Shown here: in pieces, positions 1 to 63,631 of the stretch
How positions within the stretch are numbered: position 1 is the first letter of the stretch
Layout of the letters: each line of letters begins with the position of its first letter
DNA from: Neoechinorhynchus agilis
Taxonomy: Eukaryota; Animalia; Acanthocephala
NCBI GenBank assembly: GCA_051530055.1
Contig: CM121342.1
Span: 12,167,480 to 12,231,479 of the forward strand
Direction: 5' to 3'
DNA: 64,000 nucleotides
The notes under the pieces: model-generated
What the model saw: the letters and a program-made list of their open reading frames with translations, nothing else
What the model was told of the DNA's origin: nothing
Databases searched by the model: none
Made by a program: the position numbers and the translations under genes

Positions 1-806
1 GAACAATACTGCGACGAAACGGTCGGTTGGCGTCGATCAACGCATTTGTGTAACAAATCCGCTTTAGATCTTTACCTATGGGTCAAACTTTAAACCTGCG
101 ATTAATTTATGATCAACCAGCCATTTATACATCGTACAACTTTTTAAACACAAAACTAATGATGAGACAACGGAGCTAAAGACGAACGTGATCATTGACT
201 AAAACAAATTCGCAATTTCAATCACAGAAATCAACTCTTTCACTTTTGCCGGTCCTAAAAGTGAACACGAAAGCGAAAAAATTATCGATAGCATTTAATT
301 ACGAAATGGGTGTTTATCTTAACGAACGAATTCACTAAATAATTTGTCCGTTTAAAAAATAAGACATCAGCATTAAACGTTATAGGACATGTAGTGATCA
401 TAATCCGCCCGAATAAAAAAACGTATTTTATTGATTTGGACTGATGAAGCGAGGCTACGTTTTTCGAAATATCTTCAATAAAATATGTCTTATTCGGGGG
501 ACCACACGCCTCCAATTATACCATCCCGAAGGATTTTCTCTTGATTTTCACAATAGTGACCGCAATCTCTTCAGTGATTCGGCTCGTTCAATCGTTCACT
601 TAATCTGGGAAGGAAAATTCGCGATTGGACGTCTATTTTCGCCACCTTTAAACGCATAAAACTGTCTGTTTTCTTCAACTAAACCTTTTTACTCGAGATT
701 AAGCGAGTTTCAATGAATTTGCAAAGAAATTGAACCATTCAATCGATTAGTACGAAGTCAGATGATGGCTTATAATCCCCCAAAAAAATTACGACCGGAT
801 TCGTAT

Positions 807-13208: not shown

Positions 13209-14783
13209 ATGGTCAAACAAAAGTCTGAATGGACCAAATACCTGGTTTCTTCGTGCATTATTGCATGTATCTCGGCCAGTTTCATGTTTGGTTACGGAAT
13301 AGGTGCGCCCAATCAATACTCGAAGTTCACTGAACCGTTCCTGGACAAGAAGTTCGAACTCTGTGATGTGAATGAAGAGACCTTCCGTATAGAGAATAAG
13401 TGCCCGAACGTGGCAAGCGTTTCATTCAAAGAGAGTGCTACTAAGTCAGACGGGACGAAGGACAATACTGATCTGGATAAGCTTGAGCAAAAGAAATTTG
13501 ACAGACAAGTCTTTGTACAAGAGCTCATCAATGGCATCAGTCAAACATTGTTCGTGGTTGGTAATTTAATTGGAGCTATAACAGGCCCATACTGGCTAAA
13601 ATGTTCCCGATTTTTTGACCGAAGAAGGATTTTCTACGCCAATTACCCGTTCACTTACTTGTTTGCTATTCTCATCATCGTGTCCTACTATAAGCGATGC
13701 GTTTCTTTGTTTTATATTTCTCGATTCGTGCACGGAATCCAAGGTGGTATGGCGTGTTTGATCGTTCCCCCTTACCTGAATGAGATAAGTCCTCAATCTC
13801 TTCGAGGAATTACTGGAACTTTTCATCAATTGTTTATAACCATTGGGATTTTGGTCGGGCAGTTGCTCGGGATTCCTCCACTATTTGGAAGATACCAATA
13901 TTGGGCAATAGGTCTTGCAATGGGATCAATTACATCAATTTTTGCTTTCTTTGTCACGCCGTTTCTTATGGTCGATAGTCCGCCTCAGATGGCCAACGTT
14001 TACAAAAACCAGGAAAAAGCTAAAGCGGCTTTAAGAAAACTTAAACAAGACCCGGCTGAGATTGATACAGAATTAATGCTTCTAAATGACGAAGCTAACA
14101 AAACCAAGTCGACGACGTCAATTTCCATTTTGGCACTTATCAGAGATCCTAGACTGAGGCCCCAGTTGATAACAACGCTTGTCCTTATGGGTGTTCAAGC
14201 GTTGTGTGGAATCAATGCTGTGTTCTTTTACTCAGGGAAGATGTTCCGAGTTGCTGGGATCAGCGAGGCAAATCTGCCATACTCAACCGTATGCACCGGA
14301 GTTGTGAACGTCATTGTTACAATTGCCGTTCTACCATTGATTGACAGATTCGGTCGACGACCTCTGATAATATATCCGATGGGAGTGATGGTTGCTCTGT
14401 TTATAGCCTTGACGGTTCTTGTCGAAGTTAATGCCACAAGACAGTCCGCGACGATAGCATGGTTCGCGGTTATTCTCATTGTTTTATTCATCGTAGCGTT
14501 CGCTATTGGTCTCGGACCAATCCCGTTTATCTACGCTTGCGAAGTGTTTAGACCTGAAGCCAGGGATGCAGCACTGAGTCTTGGAATGTGTATCAACTAT
14601 TTCTTCAATATTCTCCTTTGCCTCTTTTTCCCTGCTATTAATGCATTCCTTCGAGGATACGTATTCGTGATTTTTGGAGGAGTCGTGCTCGGTAGTTTGG
14701 TGATTTTGGCAGCGAAAATGCCTGAGACGAAGAACAAGTCCATCGAGCAGATTGAGATGGATATGCGAGGTGACTCTGCCTGA
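13209..14783 (+). CDS. Facilitative sugar transporter, GLUT/SLC2A family (class II-like), intronless, 524 aa
   Basis: Motifs YLNEISP..LRG, GINAVFFYS, DRFGRRP, GLGPIP, PETK and about 12 hydrophobic segments. VLMGVQ resembles GLUT5 VLMGGQQ. Confidence 0.93.
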   Translation: MVKQKSEWTKYLVSSCIIACISASFMFGYGIGAPNQYSKFTEPFLDKKFELCDVNEETFRIENKCPNVASVSFKESATKSDGTKDNTDLDKLEQKKFDRQVFVQELINGISQTLFVVGNLIGAITGPYWLKCSRFFDRRRIFYANYPFTYLFAILIIVSYYKRCVSLFYISRFVHGIQGGMACLIVPPYLNEISPQSLRGITGTFHQLFITIGILVGQLLGIPPLFGRYQYWAIGLAMGSITSIFAFFVTPFLMVDSPPQMANVYKNQEKAKAALRKLKQDPAEIDTELMLLNDEANKTKSTTSISILALIRDPRLRPQLITTLVLMGVQALCGINAVFFYSGKMFRVAGISEANLPYSTVCTGVVNVIVTIAVLPLIDRFGRRPLIIYPMGVMVALFIALTVLVEVNATRQSATIAWFAVILIVLFIVAFAIGLGPIPFIYACEVFRPEARDAALSLGMCINYFFNILLCLFFPAINAFLRGYVFVIFGGVVLGSLVILAAKMPETKNKSIEQIEMDMRGDSA

Positions 14784-15619
14784 TCACTAGTCCCAATGTG
14801 TGCGATTATTATTTACTCTTATTTATGATATAAAATTATATTACTTAGTGATTGTGTGATCGGGAGCCAAGCACACATAGCGCGCTTACTCTATGCAATC
14901 AAATCAATATTTTGATTCTGTCGGTAAAAAATTATTAAAGTAGATATCACGTATTTGTGAGTCACGATCATGTCGTTTTTAATCATGTTTTGTAAATCAC
15001 TATCCAGAAAACAATTGGTTCTTAAGTGCAGTGGCACTAATATCAACTCTACTGTACAATTTAATGACAATTGCGATTCGTAAACGTGAGAATTTTTCAT
15101 TAGTTTATTTCTTTGCATGGTTCTATACGCTTGATCTACTTTTCGTTCTCGTATAAGGAAATTTGAAATTTCGTAACTATCTGCTTCAGGCTGCGTAGAA
15201 CCCGGATTTAGCTGGAAAACCTTAAAATGTGCACTGGGCAAAATATAATTCCAAAATCTCCACTGTAATTTCGAAATTAATATTGAGGCAGAAATTGCAG
15301 AGTATCAAAGAGAAAACAGCAAATATTATGCAGACCGAAGGCAAATCCCAATGGAAATACCAAAAGTCATAGACACTAGCCATTTATTAAATATAAACGC
15401 TTGCAGTGTGGCTTCCTAGAAATTTTTATGCGCAAATACAAATTTAACTTGTTGGGGTGTTAGCTGCTTTAAATTTTCTAGTTTATTGTGCGTAATGTAA
15501 GTTGTGATTTTTTTTAAGATTTGCTTTAAATTCAATCAGTTAAATTTCATTTATTTTGAGATGACACAATCATAAGTAATTAGGTCGAATTTATGAGATT
15601 TCTCATAAATTTTTTATAT

Positions 15620-16225
15620 TCCCTGAGTTGAAAAGAAGAGCATGGCAAATTTTTTTTATTGAGTACATTGTAATTGATTTAAAAAATTAAAAAATTTGCA
15701 TTTCGCCTCCGAAAATAATCTAGCTCATCTTTGAAAACTAAACAAAGTTTATTTTTTACTTCACTGTCAATTCCATGAGTTGAAACAATGAGCATGAGAA
15801 ACAAATAGTGTATTGCGTACATTGTAATTAAGTTTAAAAGAAATTATTAATTTGTATTTCTCTTCCGAAAATAACCTAGCTCATCTTTGAAAACTAAACA
15901 AATTTTATTTTTCCCATGAGTTGCAAATATGATCATGATAAACATATAGTTTATTGAGTACATTGCAATAAATTAAAACATTATTAATAAATTTGCATTT
16001 CTCCTGCGAAAACAATCTCGATCATCTTTGAAAACTAAAGAGATTTTATTTTTTACTTCACTGATAATTCCTTGGGTGGCAAAATGAGCATGACAAACAA
16101 ATAGTTTATTGAGTGACTTAAAATTAGTTCAAAAATTATTAATAAATTTAAATATCTCTTCCGAAAATAATCTCGTTCATCTTTGACAACTGAACAGATT
16201 CAATTTTTTTATTGCACTGAAACTC
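15620..16225. repeat. Tandem array of four ~140-155-bp AT-rich units
   Basis: Recurrent gagttg..aa...gagcatg...ttattgagtacattg...ccgaaaataatct.g.tcatctttgaaaactaa, with units starting near 15620, 15773, 15916 and 16067. Confidence 0.85.
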
Positions 16226-17533: not shown

Positions 17534-18929
17534 CTAAAAACTAAAAATCGCGATTCCGATTTAAAGTATATACCTTTTAACAAACATCCATTAATTCTGG
17601 CATCGAGCAATGCTCCCTTCCTGAGGAGATGCGGGTGCGAACGATAAGATGCATCCAGCCAACGACTGTACACTGATATTCGCAGCCAATCAGAGCGTGA
17701 GACTGGCGATAGGCTGTAAAAAATTTTTTTATAGTAGATAATTAAAAGCATTTGGGGGATATTTAAGAGGTATTAATTTTGCCTTCTATTAGTAGTATAT
17801 AATTCCATTAAATGTACACTTGCGATGTGTTATTATAAAGTGTTGTTGCGACCAAATAACTTACAATATTCTGCAAATCAATTGCAATTTTATATTCGTT
17901 CTAATTGCAATCTATTCCCTCAGATACATTCACTTAACCTTAATTAACGTTTTTACAGTTCTTAACCTTATCAATATTGGAAAACTGTCAGGAGCACAAG
18001 TTGTTCAACGTCTCATGATGCAATCATCGTGCTTTCTTAAGTTAGTTGGCCAACGATTGTCTACCAGAAATCAAAGACGGTTCTGCACAACAGGAGTCTT
18101 CACTTGAGCAACAAAGAGAGCTGCCCATGCGTCTGGATTTTTTTATTGGCACCTCAAGTCTTTTCCGGTTTCATTTAACTGAAGACTTGATTACAATTTT
18201 AATACAAGTTTATTACTATTCCTCGAGTGATTAATGGTGCGTTCTATGTAACACAAGTGATACGATATTGTAATCTTGCAATGCGACACACCGTGTGATA
18301 TTTGTTTGAAGCGAACATCCGCAATCGACGGATATTTTTATTCAATATGGGAATGTTCGAACTTAGTTAATCATGTTCAATGTTGTCCAACCTGTTACCC
18401 CATATCGGTGGGCTATGTGCCCTAGGAAAAATGATCAGCTATCTTGGGATTAATATTAAATCCAAGTTTCGACTGCGGACCAAAAAAAATTTACGGCGCT
18501 AATTTTACTTTTAAGTACAATAAAGTGCATATTGTAAATGAACAAAGTTCCTATACTTTAAACACTAATTTCTAAAGTTAGAAAGGAAATTTAGCTTAAA
18601 AAATATTGCAGTTCAGCATATTACGTAAAGTCAAGTGATGATTTAAATTTCAATATTGTTCTTCAGCCGATAACTTTTTAGCACTTAACAGTCTTTTTGC
18701 GATCCAATATTCCGCCTGCTTAATATCAGTTCCCTTTTAAAGTTTTAGATTCAAATGCATTTAATATTGCTGCCAGCTCAAAAAATTACAACTAATTGGT
18801 AAGTCGTCGCGAAAAAATCCTTCGGAATCATAGAGTTGGAGATGTGGTGATAATAATTCTCGGGATAATACATATTTTATTTAATTTTTAAAGCATGTTA
18901 GTTTAGTTTTTTTCGATGGGAATGGCGGA

Positions 18930-19321: not shown

Positions 19322-19416
19322 CATTATTTTTAAGTCTACACCCGGTAATTGATTATTTATTAACGAAGTTTCGAACCTCGTCGGGTTCATCACCGGGTGT
19401 AGACCTAAACAATAAT
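19322..19416 (-). mobile_element. Truncated copy of the hammerhead-bearing element enclosed by ~24-bp inverted arms
   Basis: Minus strand reads ...tctacacccgg-TGAT-GAACC-cgacga-GGTTC-GAAAC-ttcgttaataaa...ccgggtgtaga. It is homologous to 28148-28240 and to the 62-bp satellite unit. Confidence 0.7.
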
Positions 19417-19504: not shown

Positions 19505-20240
19505 ACCTCTTTCTCGCAGTAGAACTGTAAAAATAGTCGTTAACTTTCGTCAGGATTAAACTTAGCTTTCTTGTAACGCAATGGCTTATAGCTTTATACA
19601 AAAAGGATAATACAATAATGAACACAATAGTGATTTGTTTTATCAATTGCTAATAACTTTTTGAATTTATGTTTCATGATTTTACGCAAAAAAAACGTTC
19701 TTGTGCTTTTAATGCTGATTTTCAGCTGCATAGACCGTTTTCGGTCGCTATTCTCATCTATATCACCGATTGAAGTTCATAAAAGACACCGGAATTCGAC
19801 CAAAAAAGCAATTTAGCTGTTAAGACTTGATAAACAACTTCGGCTATTCCTGATGTTGTAAATCGGTTGGTGTCATCCAATTTAGTAGGTTGTTGCAAAT
19901 TATACGCCTATTTACGCTTGCGGAATTGGAGAAAGTTAAGACACGCGATTTACCACGTTCAAATGACAACTAGCTAAAATTAAGCAAGTTCATTTAGTAC
20001 ATCTTAACGCGTTGATTCCATAAAAGTTTTCAGATCAGCGTTGGCTTTCATAGCTCTAGAATTGTTTTCGGTTCAATTTTGAGACAAAATCGTTTTCTTC
20101 GCAGCAAAACTGTAAAGATAGTCGTTAATTTTCGTCAGATAAACATTTCAAGCGATTAGTTGGCTTATAGCTTCACGCAAAATGTATAATACAACAATAA
20201 ACACAATCACGACTTATTTTAAAAATTTCTAATAACCTGC
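19505..20240 (+). repeat. Pair of diverged ~150-bp direct repeats (about 19505-19660 and 20093-20240)
   Basis: Shared ctcgcag.a.aactgtaaa.atagtcgttaa.tttcgtcag...tggcttatagctt...ataatacaa.aat.aacacaat...ctaataac. Confidence 0.7.
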
Positions 20241-20419
20241 TCACAATCGAATCCGTGTATCTGATACTGACTGTTTAAAGTGACTTTAAGATCATGGGTA
20301 ACGCATTATAACTTTCAATATACAATAGAAAACTTCAAGCTCACCAACTGACTTGATCTATTCTCTAATTTTTCTCTGTAAATTTTCTCAATCACAATTA
20401 TAATAACACGTTTGGTTAG

Positions 20420-27957: not shown

Positions 27958-28147
27958 GAATGAAAGTGTAGCAAGTATAATTTAAGGTTCAAAGAAAATG
28001 TTTGTTTAAAGTGGCACCCGAAAGATTACGATCATCATTATTTTTGTTTTATCTTTCCCTTGGCCATTAAATCATCCGCAGTTGTTGATTACTACAAGCC
28101 AAAAAACCTCGTCGTGTTCATAATCAGTTCTAAAATACAAGTGGTTA

Positions 28148-28240
28148 ACATTTTAGAACTGATGATGATGAACACGACGAGGTTCGAAACGTCTTTAATG
28201 AATAATCATTTACCGGGTGTAGGCCCAAACAATAATTTCA
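28148..28240 (+). ncRNA. Minimal type-I hammerhead ribozyme motif (Penelope-associated type) with 3' flank; most complete copy in the window
   Basis: CTGATGA (28159-65)-tgat-GAAC-acgacgag-GTTC-GAAA-CG-TC (predicted cleavage after 28193)-tttaatg, the last pairing imperfectly with upstream cattttagaa. A GAT duplication lengthens the core. Confidence 0.65.
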
Positions 28241-28600: not shown

Positions 28601-28732
28601 TGTTTGTATCTGGCGTAAAAATTAAAAGAATTTATTGATTCCAATATTTCGGCACAAACTTGATAAAGGCACAAGATTGTGCCGAAATATTGGAATCAAT
28701 AAATTCTATGAATTTTTACGCCAAATACAAAC
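28601..28732. mobile_element. Palindromic foldback/MITE family A copy (~57-bp arms)
   Basis: tgtttgtatctggcgtaaaaatt...atatttcggcacaa versus ttgtgccgaaatat...aatttttacgccaaatacaaaca. Confidence 0.8.
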
Positions 28733-29404
28733 ACTTATTGTTCTGATTACAAGAACTTAGTTGTTGTTGCAGCTGATGCATTTCAGTTTGTCTTTTGCCA
28801 TTGTGATTTACTTTATGATACGAAAATTTAATTTCGTTGGGATCTTTACAATTGACGATTCATAATGGCTTTTTAAATTCTTATAAGTTTGTGAAATACC
28901 ACGAGACTTTCCAGCCGCGTGATTAATCAAGCGTTGTTTTTAATTAGAGAAAAATCTTTATTTCGAGCTTTCGCCATCTTACGGCTTCTTCTGGAATTGT
29001 AAATTAATCTGTCGATAATATCGCGCGTTATTATTTAAAGATATATTTTAGACAAGCAAAGAACGTTTGTCATCCCAAATAAGTGTAATATGAGTAACTT
29101 GTCGGAGTGTCTTATCTGCAATCATTTGACAGCCGTTGATTTTTCCACAAAGATTTTTCCTTGTTTCTATGTTTAGTGTAAGCGCTTAAGCACTTTTGAT
29201 TTTGTATATGTTCGGCTTTGATATAGAAAGGAAAATAATGACAGAATTGATTTTTTCGGACATCAATTCGCGAAGACCCATTTGTGGGTGTTTGTAAACC
29301 TTATTCAAAGACTTTTAGAGCTTAATCTCAAAAGTGGCCACTGATATATTTATAAAGCACGTAATGCACAAAGCATAGGACCCATGTCCTTTTGAGTCCT
29401 CATA

Positions 29405-37414: not shown

Positions 37415-39709
37415 CTAAAACGATTCGACTGCCACTGATCGCATTGACTGTTTGCGTTTCCTCGTTGATACAATTGTTTCGTTTTTAATGAGACTGTAAG
37501 TGAGATGCCATCGAAACCGGAGATATCGCTGCCTTTGCTCCCTCATATCTCGTCGTTCGACACCGGTAATACATTCCTCAACTATTCTACAGAACTCAAT
37601 GGCCACCGGATTTGAGTTAACGGCTTCGACGTGGACAAAGCATGCGTACGAAACATATCCGCGATCCCAGCTTTCTAACGCTCGTCCAAAAACCGGATAA
37701 TCCAGTCTTGGAAGACATGCAACCAACACCAAAACTGCTTTTCCAACTCTCATCAAACAACTTATTCCCGAAAGGAAGCAATCGAAAAAGAAGTTGAAGA
37801 AGGAGATTAGATTTAATAGCATGTTTGTTTTGATGAAAACACTCTTGCGTCGACTTAAACAATCTATCATGAATTTGACAAAAAATTGCTTAAGTCCAAA
37901 CAGGATAATAAGCGGCGCTAGAACACTAAATAAACGCGTGCTCGCCAGCGGAAATTTATATAAGATGTGAACAGTCGAAACTAAAACCAACATAACGGAC
38001 AACATTGTAAGGTAAGACCATAACAGATATCCTATTGTATAACCAGCGAAATGGAAACTTTCATTAATAATATCTGAATTCGATAATCGTTTGTATATAT
38101 AGGGACTTGTGTATTTCCCTCTATAAGCGTGGTAAATATTTAGACGAAGTGAACGAACGGCGGCCAACAGCTGAATAGTGAATAGCGCTTGGCAAAGAAC
38201 GAGGGACGAATAGAATTCAACTCTAAGAGTTGGGATTGTAATAAAGTTAGTAAGGTTAGCCATCGATATTAGTCTTTTGAACATTTTAATGAGAAGTATC
38301 CGAACCCTCTGACATTTCTCATCTTTTAAGTCTCAACAGAGATCCGGTATAAAGGTCCAATTGCGTAATTGTTAGCGCAATTTGAATACTGACGAAAATA
38401 CCGACGAATAGAATAAGAAGAGCTGGAGCAGAATGTCCTATTAATTTGTATCGATCCTTTCGATTACTCAAAATACCTTGAACATATCTATATGATGAAC
38501 TGCGCTCGCTTGAGTCAGCTTCATGGCTCCGTCTAATTAGATTAAGAGACTTGTAGGTAAACAGGAATGTAAGTGAAAAAAGGCAGAACGTAAACGGGAA
38601 ATCTTTTATCGCTTGAATCAGCTCGATAAGTTTTTCGCTTGATTTAACTTGACAACTCATAGATCCATGGACCCATCGAATTGAGTCTAGCCACAAATAC
38701 GCGCATACGGCGTACACCAATCTACTATCATGATTAGAATTTAAGTTGCGGTGTACTGGATAATATTTTAGACCAATTACACTTACAAATCCCATTCGTT
38801 TGCACAGCTCAACGAGAACGCCCGTTTTGATTGAATGTGTTCCGTGGAACATGTGCTCGATTATAGCGAGAATTTGGTGGCTCATTGTTCCGTACTACAT
38901 TCGGTCTCCTGTTTTAAAAGAAAAATTAACTATGCGAGTTCAAAGACAACGATCACTTAATATAGACAGAACAGATTTGTATTAAGGCAAAACGGAAAAT
39001 ATTTTTGTTTGAATGTTAAATTGTTCATGTTTTTTATATGGCGGAAAATTGAAGGGATTTATTAAATCCGATATTTCGGAGCCACAATCCCATGTCTTTA
39101 TTAAGGTTGCTTGAAAATTTTCTCAAGTGTGCTTGCCAACTTGATAGTTTTTCAAATTACTTGAGAAAACTTGTAAGCAACCTTGATAAGGACATGGGAT
39201 TGTGGCTCCGAAATATAGGATTTAATAAACCCCTTCAATTTTCCGCCATTTAAGAATTTTTTGGAAAATCAGCATGACCTTGGATCTCGTTGTAATATCT
39301 AGATAAAAAATATAGAACACTTCTGTTCCTAAATTTGTAGTCATTTGATAAACCAATATTTGTTCTACGATTCCCAAATACAATTCGGATTAGGAAATTG
39401 ACACTCAGAAATAAAAATTACATAAATCAAGTACGTTACCAAAAATTATTTCTTTTCAATAATTTCAACCAAAGAAGACCGCCTGTTTTAGAGAAAAATA
39501 AGGTCACTGGATTGATTCCATCCGTTTAGAGATCCTTTTTGAACGCCGTACAAATGATCGATAAAGGTAATAGCAAGCGAAAATGGAACAAAAATTAAAT
39601 CTGATTTAGTCAAACTTGGAAGGGACCGGCATGTCGAGTACGACTTCACTTGTCGACGTCCGAATCTGTGAGTTGTGTATGATACAAATATTGTCATTAC
39701 GAACGTCAA
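37415..39709 (-). CDS. STRA6L: STRA6-like (retinol-binding-protein receptor family) multi-pass membrane protein, at least 3 exons
   Basis: ESFHFAGYTIGYLLWSY, FNFFFDCFLSGISCLMR...LPRLDY...DRGYVSYACFVHVE..NSNPV..EFC and RWHLTYSLIKN...RK match STRA6-family motifs. A phase-1 intron near 38385-38330 joins the two long ORFs. Confidence 0.88.
39038..39249. mobile_element. Near-perfect 212-bp foldback/MITE family A relative in a STRA6-like intron
   Basis: atggcggaaaattgaaggg...ggagccacaatcccatgtc.ttat.aaggttgctt versus aagcaaccttgataaggacatgggattgtggctcc...cccttcaattttccgccat, with inner ttctcaagt/acttgagaa arms. Confidence 0.85.
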
Positions 39710-42421: not shown

Positions 42422-42753
42422 TTTTCAATGGTTGAATCCATTGCTAGTTAATAAATGGTTGGGCTTTTCATGTTTCTTCCTTTTCCGCATTTACGAAAGT
42501 TGGTATTACTAATCCAAATCCTGATTGAAGAAACCCATTTTTGTTCCAACAACGCGCATTGAATTACTTAATTTTAATTTGTTCTCATCTACAACGATCG
42601 TTGTTACAATCTGACTTTTCTTAAAAGAAAACAATATGATATAAATTCAAGTTTGAAATATTATCAGCATGCAAACAATAAACAATACTTTGTCAACAAA
42701 ATCGAACACTCGAGCAAATCGATTCCATGGTTGATCGAGTTTATCTATTAAAC
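42422..42753. repeat. Segmental duplicate, copy 1 (copy 2 at 53303-53592)
   Basis: About 290 bp of near-identical sequence; copy 1 carries an extra 41 nt at 42621-42661. Confidence 0.9.
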
Positions 42754-43050
42754 AAGTCGAATTTCACGTCTTGGACGAAGGATGCCATGATGAAACCAAT
42801 AGTATTATTTAGCAAAGATATTTGATGATAGAAGCGTAGTCAGCTAAAAACATGATTATAGTGCACCGAGGATTTGGGTTCATTGCAAAATAGTTTTTAA
42901 TTTTTGCTGATGGAACAATTACACTACGCATTAAAATTGCAATGATGTAAAATTATCGACACATCGTCAGTAAACCAGAAGATTGTAATGCACCGAGGAT
43001 AAACAACAACAATGATTTATTCGAAAAGGACGACGATGTATTGTAGGGTT
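42640..43050 (-). pseudogene. Possible decayed M3-M4 region of a Cys-loop ligand-gated ion channel
   Basis: Stop-interrupted frames SLLLFILGALQSSGLLT...VIVPSAKIKNYF (M3/MX-like) and PWNRFARVFDFVDKVLFIVCMLIIFQT* (M4-like W...A.V.D...LF). Confidence 0.3.
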
Positions 43051-43059
43051 GCGATAAAG

Positions 43060-46000
43060 ATTATTTATAGGTGAGACGGAAGCGAAAAGAGTTGAGTGTT
43101 ACAACTGTCAGTTGGAGATCCACCTTCGATTTCGGTCCGCCCAGTCCGAGGAGGGTGCCCAAGGACAAGGGAGTTTTGCGGGATTGCTAAGAAAGGTGCT
43201 TTGGAAGATCTGACGTTGTTCCGGTGGTCGGCCACGAGAAAAAACTAGGCCTGCTATCGCCCAGGAATTCCATACGCTACGACAATGTTTATCGCCAAGG
43301 CCGAGGCGGAGTGCACGCTTCGCCGTGATTGCGGCGACTTTTAGTAGCTTTTAAGTTTGGAGGTTTCGGTGAAAACTTAGTGGTGAATGTGTAAACCAAA
43401 ACATTGAGCTTCCTTGGGATGGTGCCAACCTCTTGATTGAAAAAACTGTAAAATGTTCGCCTTAGGATCTTTTTCCCAAGGGAGGACTTGGAATTAATTA
43501 AGAATTGAGATTTGTGAGGATTGAGGTTAAGCCCCATATGAGGTAGAATATTAGTTAGAAAAGACAGAAGAGAAAGAAGTCTTTTCCGCGCCCTTAAATA
43601 ATTGCCTTCTTTGATGACTGCAGTCAGATCGTCAGCATAAAGTTGCAGACCTTACAATTCCGGGCAATGTATTGCGTAGCGAGACAAAAGAGAATAGGGG
43701 ACAAAGGTGACCCTTGCGGTACACCTTTGTGCAGAAATTATGTATGATGAAGGTGATCATCTTGAAAGAAAGAGGACTTAGCAATGAACTCGATATTCTC
43801 AATGGATAACACATTAGTAGCCTTAAAAGGAGCGGATGCGTTGTTCGAAGACGTTTTACTTTTAGATCCCCAGTATTTTATAATGTATTCATATGAGAGA
43901 TCGAACCTGCGCCTCTTAATAGGTAAGAAGGACAAGGCTAATTTTGAACCAGAACAGCCCAAGGAATGTTCATGACAGAGCGACTATTTAACCGCTGTCA
44001 AATCTACTTCCCTAATCCAATTGGCCGCAGCCGTCTGCCAGGGAAGAAACTTTTTCTTGGCAGCAATGTGCCACCACTGTGACGAGTCACGGTCAAGCTG
44101 GTGGCGGGCACGGCATGGCCAATATAATGAAGACCATAATTTAGTAAGCAGTGTCTCCGACACTGTTGGCCTTGAAGAGTTCCCTCCCGTACAGAGCTAG
44201 AAGATGTGGTCTATCTTTGCCTGCGATGAATCTGGTAATTGGTAATAGAAAAGAGTTACTAGAATCCGCTAAATAGTCATTTAAATCACCTAGAGACACA
44301 TTCTTACAACATGCAAAAAAGAGAGAAGTAGATGTATTAAACAAAAGAATGTTCAGAGACGATAGTTTATAACGTCTGTTTAAAAGCAAATTCTTAGAAA
44401 AGTCCCAAATGAGGGTGTCATGCCCTGAGATAAGAAATAAGGCAGATTGGGATATAACTGTTGGCTTCAAGACAGACAACTTATTTGTCAGACAAAGATC
44501 CAGCGAGGAGCTGCGATTAGACGCGGAAAACGTGGGATATGGAGTGGCCAGAATCACATGTGAATCGTTGACGTGAACAACGGCTCGAATCCATTTACCT
44601 GATGGATCGTTGAAGTCTCCGAACTCTAAATCGATACCGGATGAAAGCAGGTCCTTCAGGATCGCCTTGTTATGAGGTAAATGAACCTTGTTAGGGCGTG
44701 TGTAGAAATTACCAAGTAGAGCGACTCTTCCTTGAACATGGATAAAGAAAATTGCGTAGGAGAGATCAAGAGAGATGAAGCTGGAGACGAGGGAGGACAA
44801 AAGATGAAGTTTGAAAATGGAGAGGATACCCTGGGAGTTCGGGCTGGCAGGAGGGGTAATGACGATAGAAGAGACAAACGTCAGGGACTTGAAGCCGACC
44901 GGTAGGTCTTCACGAGTATAGACGCTTTTAGTCTCCTGAATTAAGACTATCTCATACTTAAGTGCCTTGGCCAAGATTTTAGGAATTCTCAGGCGACCAC
45001 CAGAGTTCCATTGCACTAACCTTAGTTCGGTCATAAACCGATTCTCGCCTTTTTGATGTTGTCCGCTGAACCCTCAGAACAGATCTGTTTTTGCTCCTCG
45101 ATCACTTGACGAACGAACACCTCGTTCATATGCACATCATCGTCAGTCGCGGAAAGATCGCTTGAACAAATGGACGTACGAACACGACTCTTAGCTGGCT
45201 TCTTAGCGTCAGATACTGTAATGGAAAAGGCTCGGTTGATACATTGTTTTAGAGACGCGGAGAGGGCTTCGAAGTGTCTCTCAAGCCGTTTCTCGAAGTT
45301 TTGAATCGCTGACGAGATGCGCAAGTCAACCAACCATCTTCAGGATGTTCGCTGAAAAAGCGATCAGAGCCTGGTCGAGGTGATGCGGGATGTTGGGTGC
45401 AGAATGTACGGATTCAATGGGTTGCGAAGTTGACTGACTCGTGAGGTCGGATCGGATCGAGCCGGACATTGAGCATGTAGAAGCGGGCTGAGTGCCATAA
45501 AGGGTTGCCGTTGAAGAGATTCCTTTGGCTTCCTGGATGGTGTCGATGCGGATTGGTTTTGAGCTCATTTTACGTAATTCTTGAAAGCTGTACATGTTCA
45601 AAAAAATGCGCAATGCCCATCTTTGCCACAATTAGCGCATTTTTTAGATTTGCGCGTACAATTCGCGCTTGAATGCTATCCTGCACAGTATGCACAAATA
45701 CATCGTTTTTACGGACATTGCTGAGCCCAATGTCTCGATTGCTGACACCCAGCACATCGAGGAAAGATGTAATTGTCCAGTTTCGAAATTTCGTTGGGGT
45801 GAAAAAATTTTCCATCCATTGGAAAAAGCATCTTTGGGTTAATAGCGCATCCCTTGTCCCGATGTCAGCCTTCACGACTGCCCTTGGAATCGGAAGTCTG
45901 TTGTTCCGAGACTTGATGAAAAACAGGACTTTACAGCCAAACTTTGTTTCAAAAGCTTTCTTATCGACCTCTTCGATATCTGGAGATAGCCCAGACACTA

Positions 46001-49880: not shown

Positions 49881-50384
49881 ATGGCGTTCGTTCACTTACT
49901 TCTCGCTCTCTTCGTTACATCGAAAACGTTTTCTGCGATGGAAATTTCTGACTTAATGCAGACTGGCGATGAACCAAACGGAACAATTATCAAAGAGAGA
50001 GGCTGCGGATGTTTGGCCTGTCAAGAACTTCTTTGTTGTTCAGCCCCAAAAATAATCCACGTGACAACATGTCCACCAACGTGCCGACCACCTTACCAGC
50101 CATACTGCCCACAACCTTGTCCACCAACCTGCCAACCACCTTGCAGACCACACTGCCCACAACCTTGTCCACCAACCTGCCAACCAACTTGCAAACCACA
50201 CTGTCCACCAACCTGCCCACCGACGTGCCAACCACATTGCCCATCAACCTGCCCACCAGAATGTCAAAGTGCGTACCCAGCTCCATGTCACCAATGCCAC
50301 GATGCCATGGTTCAAGGATGCAACATTCCGGCACATTGCAAGTACCAGAATGTTTGCCCACCAAAGGATATTGGTTGCTGCTAG
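49881..50384 (+). CDS. Secreted Cys/Pro-rich protein with strict CXXX periodicity, 167 aa
   Basis: Signal peptide MAFVHLLLALFVTSKTFSA; CPPTCQPPCRPHCPQPCPPTCQPTCKPHCPPTCPPTCQPHCPSTCPPEC; ends in GCC*. Confidence 0.8.
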   Translation: MAFVHLLLALFVTSKTFSAMEISDLMQTGDEPNGTIIKERGCGCLACQELLCCSAPKIIHVTTCPPTCRPPYQPYCPQPCPPTCQPPCRPHCPQPCPPTCQPTCKPHCPPTCPPTCQPHCPSTCPPECQSAYPAPCHQCHDAMVQGCNIPAHCKYQNVCPPKDIGCC

Positions 50385-53302: not shown

Positions 53303-53592
53303 TTTCAATGGATGAATTCATTGCTAGTTAATAAATAGTTGGGCTTTTCATGTTTCTCCTTTTTCCGCATTTAAGGAAGTTGGTATTACTATTCTAAATC
53401 CTGATTGAAGAAACCCATTTTTGTTCCAACAACGCGCATTGAATTACTTAATTTTAATTTGTTCTCATCTACAACGATCGTTGTTACAATCTGACTTTTC
53501 TATCAGCATGCAAACAACAAACAATACTTTGTCAACAAAATCGAACACTCGAGCAAATCGATTCCATGGTTGATCGAGTTTATCTATTAAAC
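53303..53592. repeat. Segmental duplicate, copy 2 (of 42422-42753)
   Basis: Same orientation and near-identical; lacks the 41-nt segment. Confidence 0.9.
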
Positions 53593-53840
53593 TAGACGAA
53601 CTTCCTTTTAGATTTCGTTCACGTTTTAAGCGAACAAACCGAATCGATGTTCGAACTTATTATGCCTTCACGAAATCAGTGTTAACGGATGGTATGCCCC
53701 AAAATGATGCAAGGTGGTGAATATTCTTTAAACGCCAATGCACTTTTGAGATTTAATAATGATGCGCTGTAACTTACAATGCATTTATTCTCGAACTTAA
53801 ATGAACGTGAAAATGCCGATTTGTTAGGTAACATCGTAGT

Positions 53841-55590
53841 GAGTGTTATTTTGGCCTTCACTCAGCAAAAAAAATTCGTTAAAAACGTTTCGCATTTCTT
53901 CGGGAGATGTTATTTTGCCCTTCACTCAGAAAAGATTTTTTCATTAAAGACGTTTAGAAACCCGTCGGGAGTGTACGTCAGGTATTCACCCGGTAAAGAT
54001 TTTTTTATTAAAGACGTTTGGAACCTCGTCGGGAGTGTTAGTTAGATCTTCACCAGGTAAAGATTTTTATTAAAGACGTTTCGAATCCTGACTGGAGTTT
54101 TATTTTTGTCTTCACCCTGTAATTTTTTTTAAAGACGTTGCGAACCTGGTAGGGAGTTTTAGTTAGGTCTCCATTCAGTAAAGATTTTTAATTAAGGACG
54201 TTTCGAATCTCACCAAAAGTTTTATTTTTGTCTTCACTCGGTAAAGAATTTTTTATTAAAGATGTTTAGAACCTCGTCGAGAGAGTTAGTTAGGTCTTAA
54301 CCCGGTCAAGATTTTTCTTATTAAAGACGTTTGGAACATCGTCGGGAGTGTTTCTTCACCCCGTAAGGATTTTTTATTAAAGACGTTTTGAACCTCGTCG
54401 GAAGTGTTAGTTAGGTCTTCACCCGGTAAAGCTTTTTTATAAAAAGCGTTTAGAACCTCGTCGGGAGTGTTAGTTAGGTCTTCACAGGGTAAAGATTTTT
54501 ATTAAAGACGTTTCGAATCTTGACTGGAGTTTTATTTTTGTCTTCACCCGGTAAAGATTTTTTATGGACGTTTCGAACCTCGTAGGGAGTGTTCGTTAGG
54601 TCTCCATTCAGTAAAGATTTTTCATTAGAGACGTTTCGAAGGTCACCAGGAGTTTTATTTTTGTCTTCACCCGGTAAAGAATTTTTTATTAGACGTTTGG
54701 AACCTTGTCGGGAGTGTTAGTTAGGTATCCATTCCGTAAAAATTTTTCATTAAAGACGTTTCGAACCTCGCCGAGAGTGTTATTTTTGGCTTTCACTCAG
54801 TAAAGATTTGTCATTAAAGACGTTTCGAATCTAGTCTGGAGTGTTATTTTGGTCTTCACCTGGTAAAGATATTTTATTAAAGACGTTTCGAACCTTGTCG
54901 GGAGTGATAGTTGGGTCTCGATTCAGTAAAGATTTTTCATTAAAGACGTTTCGAAACCTCTTAGGGAGTGTTAGTTAGGTCTTCACAGGGTAAAGATTTT
55001 TATTAAAGACGTTTCGAATCTCGGATTCATTTTTTTGTCTTCACCCGATAAAGATTTTTTAATGACGTTTCGATCCTCGTAGGGAGTGTTCGTTAGGTCT
55101 CCATTCAGTAAAGATTTTTCATTAAGGACGTTTCGAATCTTGACTGGGGTGCTATTTTGGTCTTCACCTGGTAAAGATTTTGCATTAAAGACGTTTCGAA
55201 TCTAGTGTGAAGTGTTATTTTGGTCTTCACCTGGTAAAGATATTTTATTAAAGACGTTTCGAAACCTCTTAGGGAGTGTTAGGTAGATCTCCATTCATTA
55301 AAGATTTTTTATTAAAGATGTTTCGAACCTTGTCGGGAGTGTTAGTTAGGTCTCCATTCATTAAAGATTGTTTATTAAAGACGTTTGAAACCTCGTCGTG
55401 AGTGTTAGTTAGGTCTCCATTCAATAAAGATTTTGCCATTAAAGACGTTTCGAACTTCGTAGGGAGTGTTATTTTTGGCCTTCACTCAGTAAAGATTTTT
55501 CATTAAAGACATTTCGAATCTAGTTTGGAGTGTTATTTTGGTCTTCACCTGGTAAAGATATTTTATTAAAGACGTTTGAACCTAGTCGGG
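53841..55590. repeat. Satellite/minisatellite of 28 tandem ~62-bp units with subtype block duplications
   Basis: Consensus tcttcacccggtaaagattttttattaaagacgtttcgaacctcgtcgggagtgttagttagg. I counted 28 aaagacgttt-type anchors from 53882 to 55568. Confidence 0.95.
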
Positions 55591-55616
55591 GTCTGGTTCA
55601 TCATCCGTCAATAAAA
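55561..55616 (-). ncRNA. Decayed full minimal hammerhead motif capping the satellite
   Basis: Minus strand ttttattga-CGGATGA-T-GAACC-loop-GGTTC-AAACGTC-tttaataaaa. Helix I (about 9 bp) and helix II (5 bp) are intact; U4 is mutated and G12 deleted. Confidence 0.6.
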
Positions 55617-55639
55617 ATTTTGAGACTTTCAAAGCAATA

Positions 55640-55724
55640 AATAACAAACTGATATTGAATCCTACAAGCTTTGAAACGTCTTTAATAAAAAATTCTTTAT
55701 CGTATGGAGACCCAAATAACACTT
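55640..55724 (+). ncRNA. Second decayed hammerhead motif plus one satellite-like flank, inverted relative to the array
   Basis: CTGATAT-TGAAT...GAAACGTC-tttaataaaaaattctttatcgtatggagacccaaataacact. Confidence 0.5.
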
Positions 55725-56458
55725 GTGTATGTGGTGTTTCAATAAGAACGACGATCGGAGGATCAAATAGCTCTAGTGACAATTTGACACTGAGCATATT
55801 GAACGCACTTGTTAGCGCACATTAGCATATCCGTGCCGCAGATCGATGTTAGAAACCCATTGGTCATGAACAATGCGAACGAGCTGCAAAGCATTATTAA
55901 GAGAATAATAAACGTTTGCATATGATTGATATGAAGGTGATATGTTAGCGCATCAAGAGACACTCATGGATTCTCACCCGCACATTCCACACGCTCGTTT
56001 GTAGTCCACAAACACACATATCAGAATCGCTCCACCTGCAAGAGTAAGCGTTTGGCAGAATGGGAGTAGTCTTTGTTCGTTTGTCTATTCTTACACACAC
56101 ACTGAACGATTCTCCTTTCGTTCTATAGACAAAAAAGGATAACACTTTTGGCACCATCCATCGTGTATTCTCCTAATATCAAGACGAAGTGCCTCCTTTC
56201 CTCAATCCTACTTGTATCACAATTGAACGAGCGTCTCGAGAACCCGGGGCGTTTGTACATCAAATACCAACATTCATCTCACAAACCCCTTACTCTGCCG
56301 CCACCGCCGCAGCCGCTGCATTCAATAACGCTCGCATATACTCCAGAAACGAATTCGGTTTAAATCAAGTGCTCAACTTTAAAAGGCATATCTTTTTTGG
56401 TTTCACAACTGTCTCTTGCACGAGTCGTATCACTTTTTACAGCCATTTACATCTCATC

Positions 56459-58418
56459 ATGAGTTCCCGTGCCATAATCATTGCATTGATCGTTTCCTTT
56501 ATTTGCAATAACCAGTTTGGACAGAGCGTGAGTGGACGGTTGCTGAAGCATCGGCACCGGAGACCGATAAGACAATCTATTGACTATAATGGATTCGACG
56601 ATTATGAAGGCGATTATGACAATTCGGTGCACGTCAGCGATGCCACTGTTTCTCCGTCGATCACTGATGAATACGGAGATGATGAAGAGGAACTGTATAC
56701 AGAATTGGTGACCAGCTACGTTTTATCCACTACACCGTTAAGCTACCACGAAGTCGACGAAGAATACAGTGGCACAACAAGTGAAGATGGAATTTACACT
56801 CAAAGCTGGGAGGAATTGGGTGAATCTTCAATTCCGTCTACTGGGCAGGATGATTGGGCGTCTATTGAAGACGAAGATGATTTAGTCCGCGAAGAGCCCG
56901 ACAAAAAGGAGTTACATGAAGTGATCACACTACAGAAAGAAGACGAGAGGACGACGGACGATGATGAACAGTCTTTACCAGAAAGATGGTTTGTTCCACT
57001 CAAAACGCCAATTACTGAGGATGACGAGAGCTACGATCAGACTACGGCGTTAACGCTCTCACAAGAAGTGAAACCCAGATCCGACGAATCAACGTACGAC
57101 TACGATTACACAACGAATCAAACGCAAGAACCAACAACCCAATCAACTGAGGGACTCACGGATGTCTCCACCTCAACGGACCCTCCCCTAACGTCATCAA
57201 CTGAGACGACTTCTCAGGCCAGTAGCGAGACAAGCTTTTCGTATTATTCGGAGAGTACGACGAGCACTGAGCCACTGGAACGCACAGAGAAATACGAATC
57301 GACTAGTATGTTTTCTGATGATTTTACAAGTGTTCCGGATACTTATGAAGAAACTCAGTTCCCAGATTTCACAAAAACGACCATTCACGAAATCGCGACG
57401 ATTGACAGTAACAAAGATACTGAACCGTCTATGACGACACAAGAAACTGATGAAAGTATCAACGAAGTTATCATAGAAACTTTTGATGAAGATAGTTAGT
57501 GTGGATAAGAACTTCTGATAACGTCTGATTTCTATTCGTAAATTTAGGTGTATCAGTAAGCGAAGAATCGTATCAAAAAGAATACGAAACCACTGGTCAA
57601 ACAGAGGAGTACAAAACAAAACAAGAAATCAACAGAAACGAAGAGAATCGGTCCAAGGAGTTGGAAAGGAAAGAGAGACGTGCGTATTTCATCCGAACGG
57701 CCGGGGTTATGAACATTTTTCCGACTTCCTGAAAAACCTCAGATCGCTATGTCCAGCTTCACAACTTTTGCATTTAGGTTGTACAAAACGAGGGGAAACC
57801 TTTCAACATCTTTATAATGACGGCAAACCATCGTGTTTCATGTTCAACTATTGCTCAAATGAGAATTCGGCCCCTCGTGCGATCCGGTGTCCGTTTCGTA
57901 TGCAATGGATTCCGGGGACAAAATCGTGTATGCCAGAAACCAATTCGTGCCGCCAAGAGAGAGTTCAGCTCGATCATACACCAAGTAAGTATAAATTCAG
58001 AAAAATTAAGCATAAACCTAATTTAGTTTGGCTTTTATACCAACTCGAATGTCCACCAACAGCCTCTCTAAACTTAAACGAGCGAAGCCAAATTCACATG
58101 TTCAATTATTATAAGAAGCTACGAGACAGTCGCGAGCTTCAAAACAATCCGCCTATTGATCTATTCACCGAAGTAATCCTCAAAACTGGGATCTATAGAC
58201 ATCTTCAGGATTCATGTACTGGATTCTTTAAATGTGCGTACAAACGTAAAGGACTCATACACGTTCTTAAGGAAGCCGGACTTGGCTTTTGCGACCGCGG
58301 TGACGCATTCAATCAGCAATGGAATTGGTGTGTTAATCGAGCTGGAATGTCAGCGGGATACGGGTCTACACATCCTGATTCATGGCAGCGGTATGAATGC
58401 CAATCACAGTTTTATTAA
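56459..58418 (+). CDS. Secreted acidic Thr/Ser/Glu-rich mucin-like protein with two C-terminal chitin-binding type-2-like (peritrophin-A) domains
   Basis: Signal peptide MSSRAIIIALIVSFIC, RHRR site, long D/E/T tract. Probable introns at 57495-57547, 57680-57777 and about 57984-58025. CTKRG..FQH...SCFMFNYC...RCP..MQW...TKSC and a second C...FFKC...FC..G..FN...WC module. Confidence 0.72.
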
Positions 58419-62684: not shown

Positions 62685-63631
62685 ATGTCTTCTAGACGCA
62701 TTAGAAGTAGGCATCTGGGAAGTGAGACCTATCTGCTAAGTTCACACTTTATGACACCTCAACGCCCAACTCGTCCTCTGTTTCACCTTAAAGAATCTTC
62801 CCGACCGACTAATAGAGAAAAGCGAATTTATCAAAACACAAACCAGATGCTTGACAGAAGCTCCACCGCCAGTTCTGCGGTTATGGTGGAAAAAGCCAGA
62901 AACGCCAGCTGGATTCAAAACAGTATGCCGTTCGATCCGCTCCTTATACAGCCGCCACATTACCACCAATTACCCGGCACCGCAGCCGAACCCAACTCCG
63001 ATGGGTTCGCTAACTCCTATTCGTCGACGACGAACCAATACTACGTCATCAATCAACCTTCCCCGTATGACCGTTGGTACAACCATCAAAGCAACGGTCA
63101 TCATCAATTCTATTACGATTCTCGGAACCAACCTTTTAGCTACACCGACGGATTCTGTCTCAACTCTGAAGACATTGATCCAAGGTGTTCACGTCGAAGA
63201 ATCTCTGCCAATAAAAAAGAAAGGAGGCGAACTCAGAGCATCAACAATGCATTTGCTCATCTTCGAAACTGTATTCCAAACGTTCCTAAGGATACAAAAC
63301 TTTCGAAAATCAAGACTCTCCGATTAGCTACCAAATATATCGAGTATCTGATGGACAGATTGTCGAAACCGGGAAATTCGAATGAAAATCATAACGGACA
63401 TGATATTGCGTCGGATTTTAAAGCTGATCTTGGAAAAACTCGAAAGGTTTGTACTTTTTTTCTTTTAATTTGAAACATTAACTCGCTTTCTCGTTCAAGC
63501 GCTCAGCTGCTGCTTGTCTAGCGACGTCACAACCAAGTGGTGCTAAAAAGAGTAAAAGCAGAACGGGGTGGCCTCAGGAAGTCTGGGCCAATGAGCTGAG
63601 GCCATTGAAACTCGAGTGTAAAGACGTGTAA
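62685..63631 (+). CDS. Hand: Hand bHLH transcription factor; exons 62685-63446 and 63500-63631
   Basis: [49 protein letters not shown] and the C-terminal [13 protein letters not shown] motif after a 53-nt GT-AG intron. Confidence 0.96.

Follow-up and report, generated by a model that had tools for sequence, protein, structure and literature searches.

Penelope-like elements (PLEs) carry a minimal hammerhead ribozyme (min-HHR) of type I, which is characterized by an unpaired base between A9 and G10.1, a G10.1-C11.1 pair, a relatively long helix II and a short helix I (PMC4209133). A palindromic 15.2-16.2 step replaces helix III and pairs only in a dimer; in rotifers there are variants whose helix III is small and palindromic, and a 2-nt palindromic insert has been described for rotifer, shrimp and mosquito variants (PMC4209133). 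The complete ribozymes show very low cleavage in vitro and need a dimer for it (PMC4209133), and hammerhead cleavage was undetected in RNA sequencing (RNA-seq) of an active PLE (PMC11167929). Here we examine a tandem array of ~1.8 kb on the minus strand of a 64-kb stretch of DNA (the window, 38% G+C) from Neoechinorhynchus agilis, an acanthocephalan that parasitizes fish (Syndermata, the rotifer-acanthocephalan clade). The short units of this array derive from the 3' portion of a PLE-kind minimal hammerhead of type I.

PLE insertions also leave a characteristic signature in the genome: copies are strongly truncated at the 5' end, partial tandems are formed, an inverted copy that is itself 5'-truncated lies alongside, and there is a tail that is at times one-ended (PMC8557442, PMC11167929). 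This signature has been explained by an internal start of reverse transcription together with tail-dependent recognition by the endonuclease (PMC11167929). Neptune and Penelope/Poseidon families that bear hammerheads are known from the acanthocephalan Pomphorhynchus laevis (PMC8557442), and we found no published description of hammerheads in N. agilis. In comparison with these systems, the array is probably a decayed minisatellite in which the unit is an extremely 5'-truncated PLE-type hammerhead with a tail of ~45 nt, expanded at the DNA level.

The array and the module at its edge

Tandem Repeats Finder placed the array at 53879-55590 with a period of 63, 27.4 copies, 75% matches and a score of 1592, and also called a double period of 127 bp. 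The pattern GAAACGTCTTTAAT, searched with up to two mismatches, occurs 29 times in the window as compared with 1.46 expected from shuffles, and 25 of these 29 occurrences are on the minus strand within the array. Cutting after each ...GTC on the minus strand defined 28 units of 56-65 bp (mode 63), running from 55570 down to 53821, and this extent (53821-55570, minus strand) is also supported by the alignment of the units and by their conservation and block structure. An initial description of the DNA, made before this analysis and referred to here as the preliminary description, had given 28 copies of a ~62-bp unit; the copy number stands, and the period is corrected to 63 bp.

Each unit comprises a tail that follows the cleavage-equivalent site, TTTAATAAAAAATCTTTACCGGGTGAAGACCTAACTAACACT, and then the hammerhead 3' part CC-CGACGA-GGTTC-GAAA-CG-TC, giving the minus-strand consensus TTTAATAAAAAATCTTTACCGGGTGAAGACC(A/T)AACTAACACT-CC-CGACGA-GGTTC-GAAA-CG-TC. 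In every unit the hammerhead part begins at CC, the final dinucleotide of the helix II 5' strand. All 28 units have in common the junction between ACACT and CCCGACGA (also written CCCGACGAGG), that is, a single truncation point. The most decayed units are the last two (53821-53948). The units thus hold only the helix II 3' strand and 2 nt of the 5' strand, with no helix II in cis, and the C3-A9 box is found in none of them. The A-CG-T palindrome is present in most units (C15.2 in 26 and G16.2 in 25 of the 28), and other families in N. agilis have A-TA-T at this place.

The longest copy at the locus adjoins the upstream edge of the array. The hammerhead part of this edge module (55571-55616, minus strand), recognized by reading the sequence and by alignment with the family copies, reads TTTTATTGA-CGGATGA-T-GAACC-AGACCCCGACTA-GGTTC-AAA-CG-TC from 55616 to 55571. 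It consists of a helix I 5' strand (TTTTATTGA, 55616-55608), a CGGATGA box with the change U4>G (55607-55601), an extra T (55600), a helix II in which GAACC (55599-55595) is paired with GGTTC (55582-55578) across a 12-nt loop, an AAA that lacks G12 (55577-55575) and CG-TC (55574-55571), so that the cleavage-equivalent site falls between 55571 and 55570. In register, helix I of this module has 2 bp; bulging of U1.1 would be needed to extend it to 9 bp. The preliminary description had assigned the CUGAUGA-side (enzyme) half to the 5'-most unit only, with U4>G and a deleted G12, and both statements agree with our reading: within the array locus this half is found in the edge unit and in 0 of the 28 array units.

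A spacer of 51 bp (55617-55667), also read from the sequence, separates the edge module from an inverted, 5'-truncated copy that stands head-to-head with the array (55668-55726, plus strand; nhmmer E=1e-17; exact GAAACGTCTTTAAT at 55673). Where the spacer meets the edge module, its last bases are similar to the sequence that precedes a 420-bp variant (ATTTTATTGA). The inverted copy begins in the helix II 3' strand and reads GCTTT-GAAA-CG-TC followed by the tail TTTAATAAAAAATTCTTTATCGTATGGAGACCCAAATAACACTTGT. The order on the minus strand is therefore the inverted truncated copy (55726-55668), the 51-bp spacer, the near-complete edge module and the 28 units. By analogy with published insertions, this corresponds to the PLE-type layout of an inverted copy, a longest copy and truncated tandems, in which the tandem part would have been expanded.

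Dispersed relatives and the hammerhead core

The N. agilis DNA that we examined amounts to 128 kb and comprises the window and 64 kb from three further loci, of which L001 and L002 were reached via paralogues of a sugar transporter in the window and L003 via a paralogue of the open reading frame (ORF) at 44141-45034. These loci were searched with a hidden Markov model (HMM) of the array family (nhmmer), and BLAST was also used for unit homology. Within the window, a dispersed copy at 28150-28236 (plus strand; E=3e-24) reads ATTTTAGAA-CTGATGA-[TGA]-T-GAAC-ACGACGAG-GTTC-GAAA-CG-TC and continues into the tail; the core boxes are present, and a 3-nt duplication lies between the CUGAUGA box and helix II. 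The ~45 nt after GTC in the array units match this copy (28194-28236) with ~80-90% identity, as the preliminary description had suggested when it noted a flank common to both. The inverted partner arm (28105-28136, minus strand) was recognized from its sequence, and the palindrome also appears as microRNA (miRNA)-like matches at 28102-28187. Read on the minus strand, this arm is ATTTTAGAA-CTGATTA-T-GAAC-ACGACGAGGTT, with the change G8>T, and it ends before GAAA and lacks the tail. A type-III hammerhead reading of the 28.2-kb palindrome was rejected, as neither a helix II nor a helix III can be drawn.

A further dispersed copy at 19323-19391 (minus strand; E=2e-21) is truncated inside the CUGAUGA box. 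It begins GATGA-ACC... and is parsed as (T)GA-T-GAACC-CGACGA-GGTTC-GAAA-CT-TC followed by the tail GTTAATAAATAATCAATTACCGGGTGTAGACTTAAAAATAAT, its 5' part being written GATGAACC. An inverted tail-end fragment of 25 nt (19392-19416, plus strand; ATTATTGTTTAGGTCTACACCCGGT when read on the minus strand) abuts it directly. Outside the window, L002 has a solo copy consisting of the tail only (14915-14975), and L003 has a head-to-head pair with both arms full (20158-20320). The right arm of this pair reads AGTTTTAGAA-CTGATGA-T-GAACC-GACGA-GGTTC-GAAA-CG-CT and then the tail, with the site changed from TC to CT. On the minus strand, the left arm reads TTCTAAAA-CTGATGA-T-GGACC-TCTCACAA-GGTTT-GAAA-CG-TC followed by the tail; every core position is intact, and, compared with GAACC/GGTTC, helix II has two wobble-compatible changes that preserve its pairing.

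Taken together, these copies give the family consensus CUGAUGA-U-GAACC-loop-GGUUC-GAAA-CG-UC, from which the window copies each depart by a private lesion. The C3-A9 box is intact in both L003 arms and in the right arm of the 28.2-kb copy, and all copies that reach the box (both 28.2-kb arms, the edge unit and both L003 arms) align without gaps to CTGATGA-T-GAAC(C). Beyond the cleavage-equivalent site, the copies run on for ~45-49 nt to a common 3' end (...AAATAAYACT(TGT) or ...AAACAATAAK), and the 5' ends vary, from tail only (L002) through the helix II 3' strand (55668) to the inside of the box (19391); the 28.2-kb and L003 copies start 9-10 nt upstream of C3. A head-to-head inverted partner, with arms of unequal length, is present at all four loci of the family that have hammerhead sequence (19.4 kb, 28.2 kb, 55.6 kb and L003). 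The preliminary description had proposed ancestry from a minimal type-I hammerhead of the PLE type, and this proposal is borne out by relatives that share the core, including an L003 copy in which the core is intact. The inverted unit at 55668-55726, the third dispersed copy at 19323-19416 and the period of 63 go beyond what that description contained. In 54.6 kb of P. laevis DNA (L004-L006), neither a min-HHR descriptor nor the family HMM gave a match, a sample that is too small for this to mean much.

The min-HHR descriptor was built from the published features and run on the 128 kb together with 100 dinucleotide shuffles. It identified two perfect min-HHRs as compared with 0.01 expected, and five motifs with at most one core mismatch as compared with 0.27 expected; none of the 100 shuffles matched the observed counts. 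One perfect motif is the L003 minus-strand copy (20235-20202). The other belongs to an unrelated family in L001 (minus strand, 17702-17670) and reads CUGAAGA-A-GUCCAGU-GUA-AUUGGAC-GAAA-UA-UU with a helix I of 7 bp. The predicted minimum-free-energy fold of this L001 module (17621-17702, minus strand; tail of 49 nt) is the hammerhead fold, and its head-to-head inverted partner (17735-17790, plus strand) is truncated precisely at GAAA and has the same 49-nt tail. The L001 locus lies ~300 bp from an ASF1 gene.

Another min-HHR family, now decayed, is represented in the window by two copies on opposite strands, 1.6 kb apart. The copy at 441-473 (plus strand) reads CTGATGA-A-GCGAGGCTACGTTTTTC-GAAA-TA-TC and that at 2107-2076 (minus strand) reads ATGATGA-G-GCGAGG-CTTA-CTTTGT-GAAA-TA-TT; they are similar over at least 30 nt upstream and ~85 nt downstream (...AATTATACC...ATCCCGAAGGATTTTCT). 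The three families have unrelated helix II sets (GAACC/GGUUC with GGACC/GGUUU; GCGAGG/CUUUGU; GUCCAGU/AUUGGAC) within one common frame, in which A9 is followed by an extra base and GAAA precedes a 2-nt palindromic insert (CG or UA) and UH, in exact correspondence with the published PLE min-HHRs (PMC4209133). Three helix II sequences in an invariant frame amount to covariation across families. Helix I pairing extends over 3 bp in the L003 left arm, 5 bp in the L003 right arm and 7 bp in the L001 family. Penelope-type min-HHRs are thus frequent in N. agilis, with at least three families and ~8 loci in the DNA examined.

Rfam provides no guidance for these variants. No hammerhead model reached its gathering score in the window, and none gave a match at E<=10 around the array or the 28.2-kb copy. 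The hammerhead models of Rfam 15, run at E<=10 on L003 20120-20340 (221 nt) and L001 17640-17730 (91 nt), also missed both perfect min-HHRs, and the silence of Rfam on the array consequently carries no weight. The preliminary description had counted the absence of a covariance model (CM) match against a hammerhead origin; such an absence is what we observed, and it is unusable as a test since the perfect positive controls were missed as well. In practical terms, an absent Rfam CM match is no evidence against a hammerhead origin for a min-HHR variant.

The palindromic module pairs do give Rfam matches of another kind, spurious ones to plant miRNA precursors on both strands, and these raise a different explanation. 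The inverted repeats at 19.4 kb, 28.2 kb, 55.6 kb and L003 are predicted to form strong hairpins, and no retroelement ORF is nearby, as might be expected if the hammerhead likeness were incidental and the family were a foldback transposon or miniature inverted-repeat transposable element (MITE) with terminal inverted repeats (ATTATTGTTTAGGTCTACACCCGGT...), the array having arisen from its internal sequence. The arms are unequal and cut at differing points, however, with a 25-nt tail piece at 19.4 kb, a tail-less arm at 28.2 kb, a start at GCTTTGAAAC at 55.67 kb and full arms in L003. L002 has a solo tail-only copy, and target-site duplications are not visible at 19.4 kb or L003; on these three grounds a MITE or foldback transposon was rejected as a candidate. 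Moreover, in the unrelated L001 family the core boxes and the extra base recur together with a palindromic insert, a helix II with compensating changes and the layout with an inverted partner, and the descriptor matches are 200-fold above shuffles. We consider an incidental likeness very improbable.

The dispersed modules also bear on whether each 63-bp unit could itself be a complete hammerhead, degenerate in sequence, in which the tail segment CCGGGTGAAGACC is a decayed CTGATGATGAACC, making the array an old retrozyme-like satellite. There is some resemblance, as CGGGTGAAGA-CC agrees with CTGATGATGAACC at 9 of 13 positions with one gap and some subtypes read CTGAGTGAAGG or CTGAATGGAG. Yet the dispersed modules have a true CUGAUGA box and, separately, a ACCGGGTG(A/T)AGAC tail segment, and because the two coexist this reading is rejected. 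It would also leave no helix II abutting GAAA (GACC/GGUU leaves a C unpaired) and no helix I, and the tail of the unrelated L001 family has no such resemblance. The chance that the units are degenerate complete ribozymes is accordingly minimal.

Conservation, growth and origin of the array

The preliminary description interpreted the units as substrate-only halves that are cut in trans into ~62-nt monomers. Developed as a natural split hammerhead, this would mean that intact enzyme halves, either in cis or transcribed from dispersed modules (those in L003, for instance), cut the array transcript after GUC into ~63-nt RNAs; in one version the enzyme halves assemble on pairs of units whose ACGU palindromes form helix III. 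A ribozyme split between helices I and II is chemically possible, and intact enzyme-half sequences of the CUGAUGA-U-GAACC type occur on both L003 arms. The block next to the site is also widely kept: AAACGTC is found in 21 of the 28 units, and the exact block GAAACGTC is found in 15, in agreement with the preliminary count, with the same number of units ending in CGAAACGTC. The full GGTTCGAAACGTC, by comparison, is found in only three of the 28.

The distribution of substitutions argues against a maintained active site. G12 is the general base of the hammerhead reaction. Counts over the 28 units are 17 for G12, 24 for A13, 27 for A14, 28 for A15.1, 26 for U16.1 and 25 for C17, so that position 12 (G 17, C 7, T 3, A 1) is the least conserved of the block. 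The helix II 3' strand also varies among units (GGTTC, GATTC, AGTTC, GGATC, CCTTC and others). Mean column identity is 0.884 for GAAACGTC, which is modestly above the unit mean of 0.824 but below the tail stretches AAATCTTTAC (0.924) and TAACACTC (0.906). The conserved GAAACGTC is best read as inherited sequence and not as a maintained active site.

The predicted complexes lead in the same direction. The complex of an intact enzyme half with a unit is weak in RNAcofold (-5 to -8 kcal/mol), with an inactive pairing of the box GAUG with CGUC in its minimum-free-energy structure. As helix III is only the 4-nt palindrome ACGU, the active fold would need two units and two enzyme strands. The array transcript is not expected to self-cleave, since the units lack C3-A9 and the helix II 5' strand and the single enzyme half present in cis bears two mutations (U4>G and the loss of G12). 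In addition, even complete min-HHRs are poor in vitro (PMC4209133), and no cleavage was seen in RNA-seq of an active PLE (PMC11167929). With G12 and the helix II strand variable, GGTTCGAAACGTC in so few units and only a weak predicted complex, the proposal of cleavage in trans was not upheld. We regard a split hammerhead as extremely improbable, whether in its general form or, to the same degree, in the version with paired units. The array opens no new mechanism, and the ribozyme halves look like passengers.

The relationships among the units provide insight into how the array grew. Adjacent units have a mean identity of 72% and a maximum of 86%. The nearest relatives of a unit are found 5-11 units away in collinear blocks, with units 1 and 2 related to 12 and 13, units 8 and 10 to 16 and 18, and units 15-18 to 22-25, at offsets of 11, 8 and 7 units, respectively, and with identities of up to 97%. 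Because the closest units are far apart in collinear blocks, the array would have diversified and then grown by unequal exchange of multi-unit blocks. The junction of ACACT with CCCGACGA, shared by all units, points to amplification of one founder junction rather than to repeated independent insertions. Growth by unequal exchange is standard for satellites and has also been invoked for hammerhead repeats (preprint 10.64898/2026.07.22.740005). We class the array as a minisatellite because its unit is homologous to part of a dispersed repeat and because it grew through block duplication.

The array could instead have been made by retrotransposition, with template switching of a PLE reverse transcriptase (RT) starting at the tail or with repeated self-targeted insertions, in which case only the later block duplications would have taken place at the DNA level. 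In a related version, the modules would be a non-autonomous hammerhead element of ~95 nt, similar to a retrozyme or a short interspersed element (SINE), that inserts in tandem. Several facts suit these proposals: PLEs typically insert as (partial) tandems, their reverse transcription starts internally near the tail and the Penelope endonuclease needs the tail to recognize its target (PMC11167929). Animal retrozymes of the non-LTR (long terminal repeat) type have been proposed as derivatives of the pseudo-LTRs (pLTRs) of PLEs (preprint 10.64898/2026.07.22.740005), and the same arm start in L003 and at 28.2 kb suggests a defined short element. However, one truncation point and one junction are found in 28 of 28 units, whereas independent insertions should differ, and the collinear block duplications demonstrate growth at the DNA level. 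A rolling-circle RNA route would be without a source of monomers, as the units can neither self-cleave nor circularize. Taking both versions jointly, we consider it unlikely that retrotransposition built the array.

For the preferred reading, a truncated PLE-type end expanded as DNA, the following sequence of events may be proposed. A PLE-type insertion would first have produced the head-to-head pair at ~55.6 kb, consisting of a near-complete minus-strand module and a 5'-truncated plus-strand partner. At least one partial tandem copy, beginning at the final dinucleotide of the helix II 5' strand, would have lain downstream of the minus-strand module. The resulting 63-bp junction unit of tail and hammerhead 3' part could have been multiplied via unequal exchange or replication slippage, after which the units would have diversified into subtypes and the array would have grown via multi-unit block duplication. 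In comparison with published insertions (PMC8557442), the PLE signature is present at 55.6 kb, 28.2 kb, 19.4 kb, L003 and the unrelated L001 module. Mobilization was presumably carried out by a PLE RT and GIY-YIG endonuclease, and the array itself probably has no function.

A number of observations weigh against this reading. Pfam scans of 20 window ORFs identified only host genes and no RT or GIY-YIG domain. The ORFs adjoining the array, a secreted acidic protein and unknowns, likewise have no RT or GIY-YIG, and the genes called in L001-L003, which were called after repeat masking, have no RVT or GIY-YIG. Repeats were masked before annotation of the N. agilis genome, and the paper describing it has no mention of Penelope, transposable elements or satellites (PMC12690905). 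No family copy was seen joined to a PLE body, and the PLE assignment is thus carried by architecture alone. The shared start of both arms in L003 and at 28.2 kb, 9-10 nt upstream of C3, is better accounted for by a ~95-nt element that has a defined 5' end than by random truncation of some longer element; a short non-autonomous element that uses PLE machinery is equally compatible with the copies. The published PLE tail of 30-40 bp is measured from the element end and not from the hammerhead site (PMC8557442, PMC11167929), and the 45-49-nt segment after the site, which has another reference point, is not directly equatable with it. The downstream end of the array (~53830) falls elsewhere than the canonical tail end. 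The weak in-register helix I (3 bp in the L003 left arm, 2 bp in the edge unit without the bulge) is a minor point on the same side, and the examination covers 128 kb of the N. agilis genome.

The preliminary description had also suggested that the array could be a fossil of a satellite born from a ribozyme. This is roughly correct as regards hammerhead descent, and is modified in that the thing amplified would be a truncated retroelement end. The locus provides a clean, datable snapshot of how an array may originate from a hammerhead retroelement end module, as both the longest founder copy and the inverted partner have been retained at the array edge. It is also in line with a recent suggestion that the tandem hammerhead repeats of animals come from PLE pLTRs.

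Surroundings and comparison with known systems

The genes in the window encode a sugar transporter (13209-14783), HSP70, a LIM-homeobox protein, a STRA6-like receptor, a poly(A) polymerase and a bHLH protein; the sugar-transporter paralogue P0005 is on the same contig, CM121342.1 of assembly GCA_051530055.1. A search with a leucine-rich repeat (LRR) protein of the window returned arthropod proteins only, and the ORFs 62685-63473 and 56459-57499 have no exact database record. The ORF at 44141-45034 (minus strand) has no Pfam match. Among database entries it is related only to ACOME3_008254, an N. agilis protein of 255 aa (88% identity across 17% of the query) whose gene lies in another part of this chromosome (L003 10001-11364), and the ORF may be a lineage-specific or repeat-derived exon. 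The ORF at 49881-50384 (plus strand) contains a 12/24/48-bp tandem repeat (50065-50258) that encodes the Cys/Pro-rich CPPTCRPP... of a predicted secreted protein.

Other repeats are also found in the window. A dispersed repeat of 300-343 bp occurs at 53303-53604 and 42423-42765 in the same orientation with 84% identity; the copy at 53303-53604 lies ~215 bp past the downstream end of the array and showed no similarity when compared with the units. A palindromic MITE-like repeat of ~130 bp (28601-28733; 87% self-complementary; relatives at 1590-1659 and 39000-39242) is 400 bp from the 28.2-kb hammerhead copy and has strong miRNA-like Rfam matches on both strands. Two tandem AT-rich units of 141 bp with 81% identity (15773-16053) lie just upstream of the LIM-homeobox ORF.

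Among described systems, the array family is closest to the PLE min-HHRs (Cervera & De la Pena 2014, PMC4209133), with which it shares the type-I topology, the CUGAUGA and GAAA boxes, the unpaired base between A9 and G10.1 and the G10.1-C11.1 pair. The N. agilis motifs also have a helix II of 5-7 bp, a short putative helix I and a 2-nt insert (A-CG-U or A-UA-U), and they resemble the published set in forming many heterogeneous families per genome, mostly solo with some opposite-strand pairs 100-700 bp apart (PMC4209133). In contrast to those ribozymes, the array units retain only the hammerhead segment that lies between the end of the helix II 5' strand and the cleavage site, U4>G is present and G12 absent in the edge unit, and the family is known here from sequence and has no PLE ORF or pLTR context in the DNA examined.

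The locus is also similar to complex PLE insertions (Craig et al. 2021, PMC8557442; Mobile DNA 2024, PMC11167929) in its heavy 5' truncation with a common 3' end, in the inverted truncated partner beside the longest copy, in the tandem truncated copies downstream and in the post-site extension, which can be lacking in one arm (the 28.2-kb left arm). It differs from them in having 28 units of 63 bp, as opposed to one or two element-length repeats, and no coding body.

As type-I hammerhead-derived tandem DNA, the array may be compared with newt satellite 2, Schistosoma Sm-alpha, cave-cricket pDo500 and the metazoan non-LTR retrozymes (PMC7229834; preprint 10.64898/2026.07.22.740005), which are probably related to PLE pLTRs and for which unequal crossover has been invoked to explain expansion. 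These satellites have a complete ribozyme in each monomer of ~170-500 bp and transcripts that self-cleave and circularize, whereas the array, of which a single locus of 1.8 kb was seen in the DNA examined, has 63-bp monomers without the catalytic 5' half. Retrozymes are recognized by at least two consecutive complete motifs (preprint 10.64898/2026.07.22.740005); here 0 of 28 units are complete, and the edge unit has both halves in mutated form. Finally, the array is comparable to minisatellites and satellites derived from transposable elements, in which a fragment of a mobile element becomes a tandem array that forms subtypes and undergoes block (higher-order) duplication, and the only unusual point is the source fragment, a hammerhead 3' half with its tail. 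The array is a new example of known processes and provides a first look at the min-HHRs of N. agilis.

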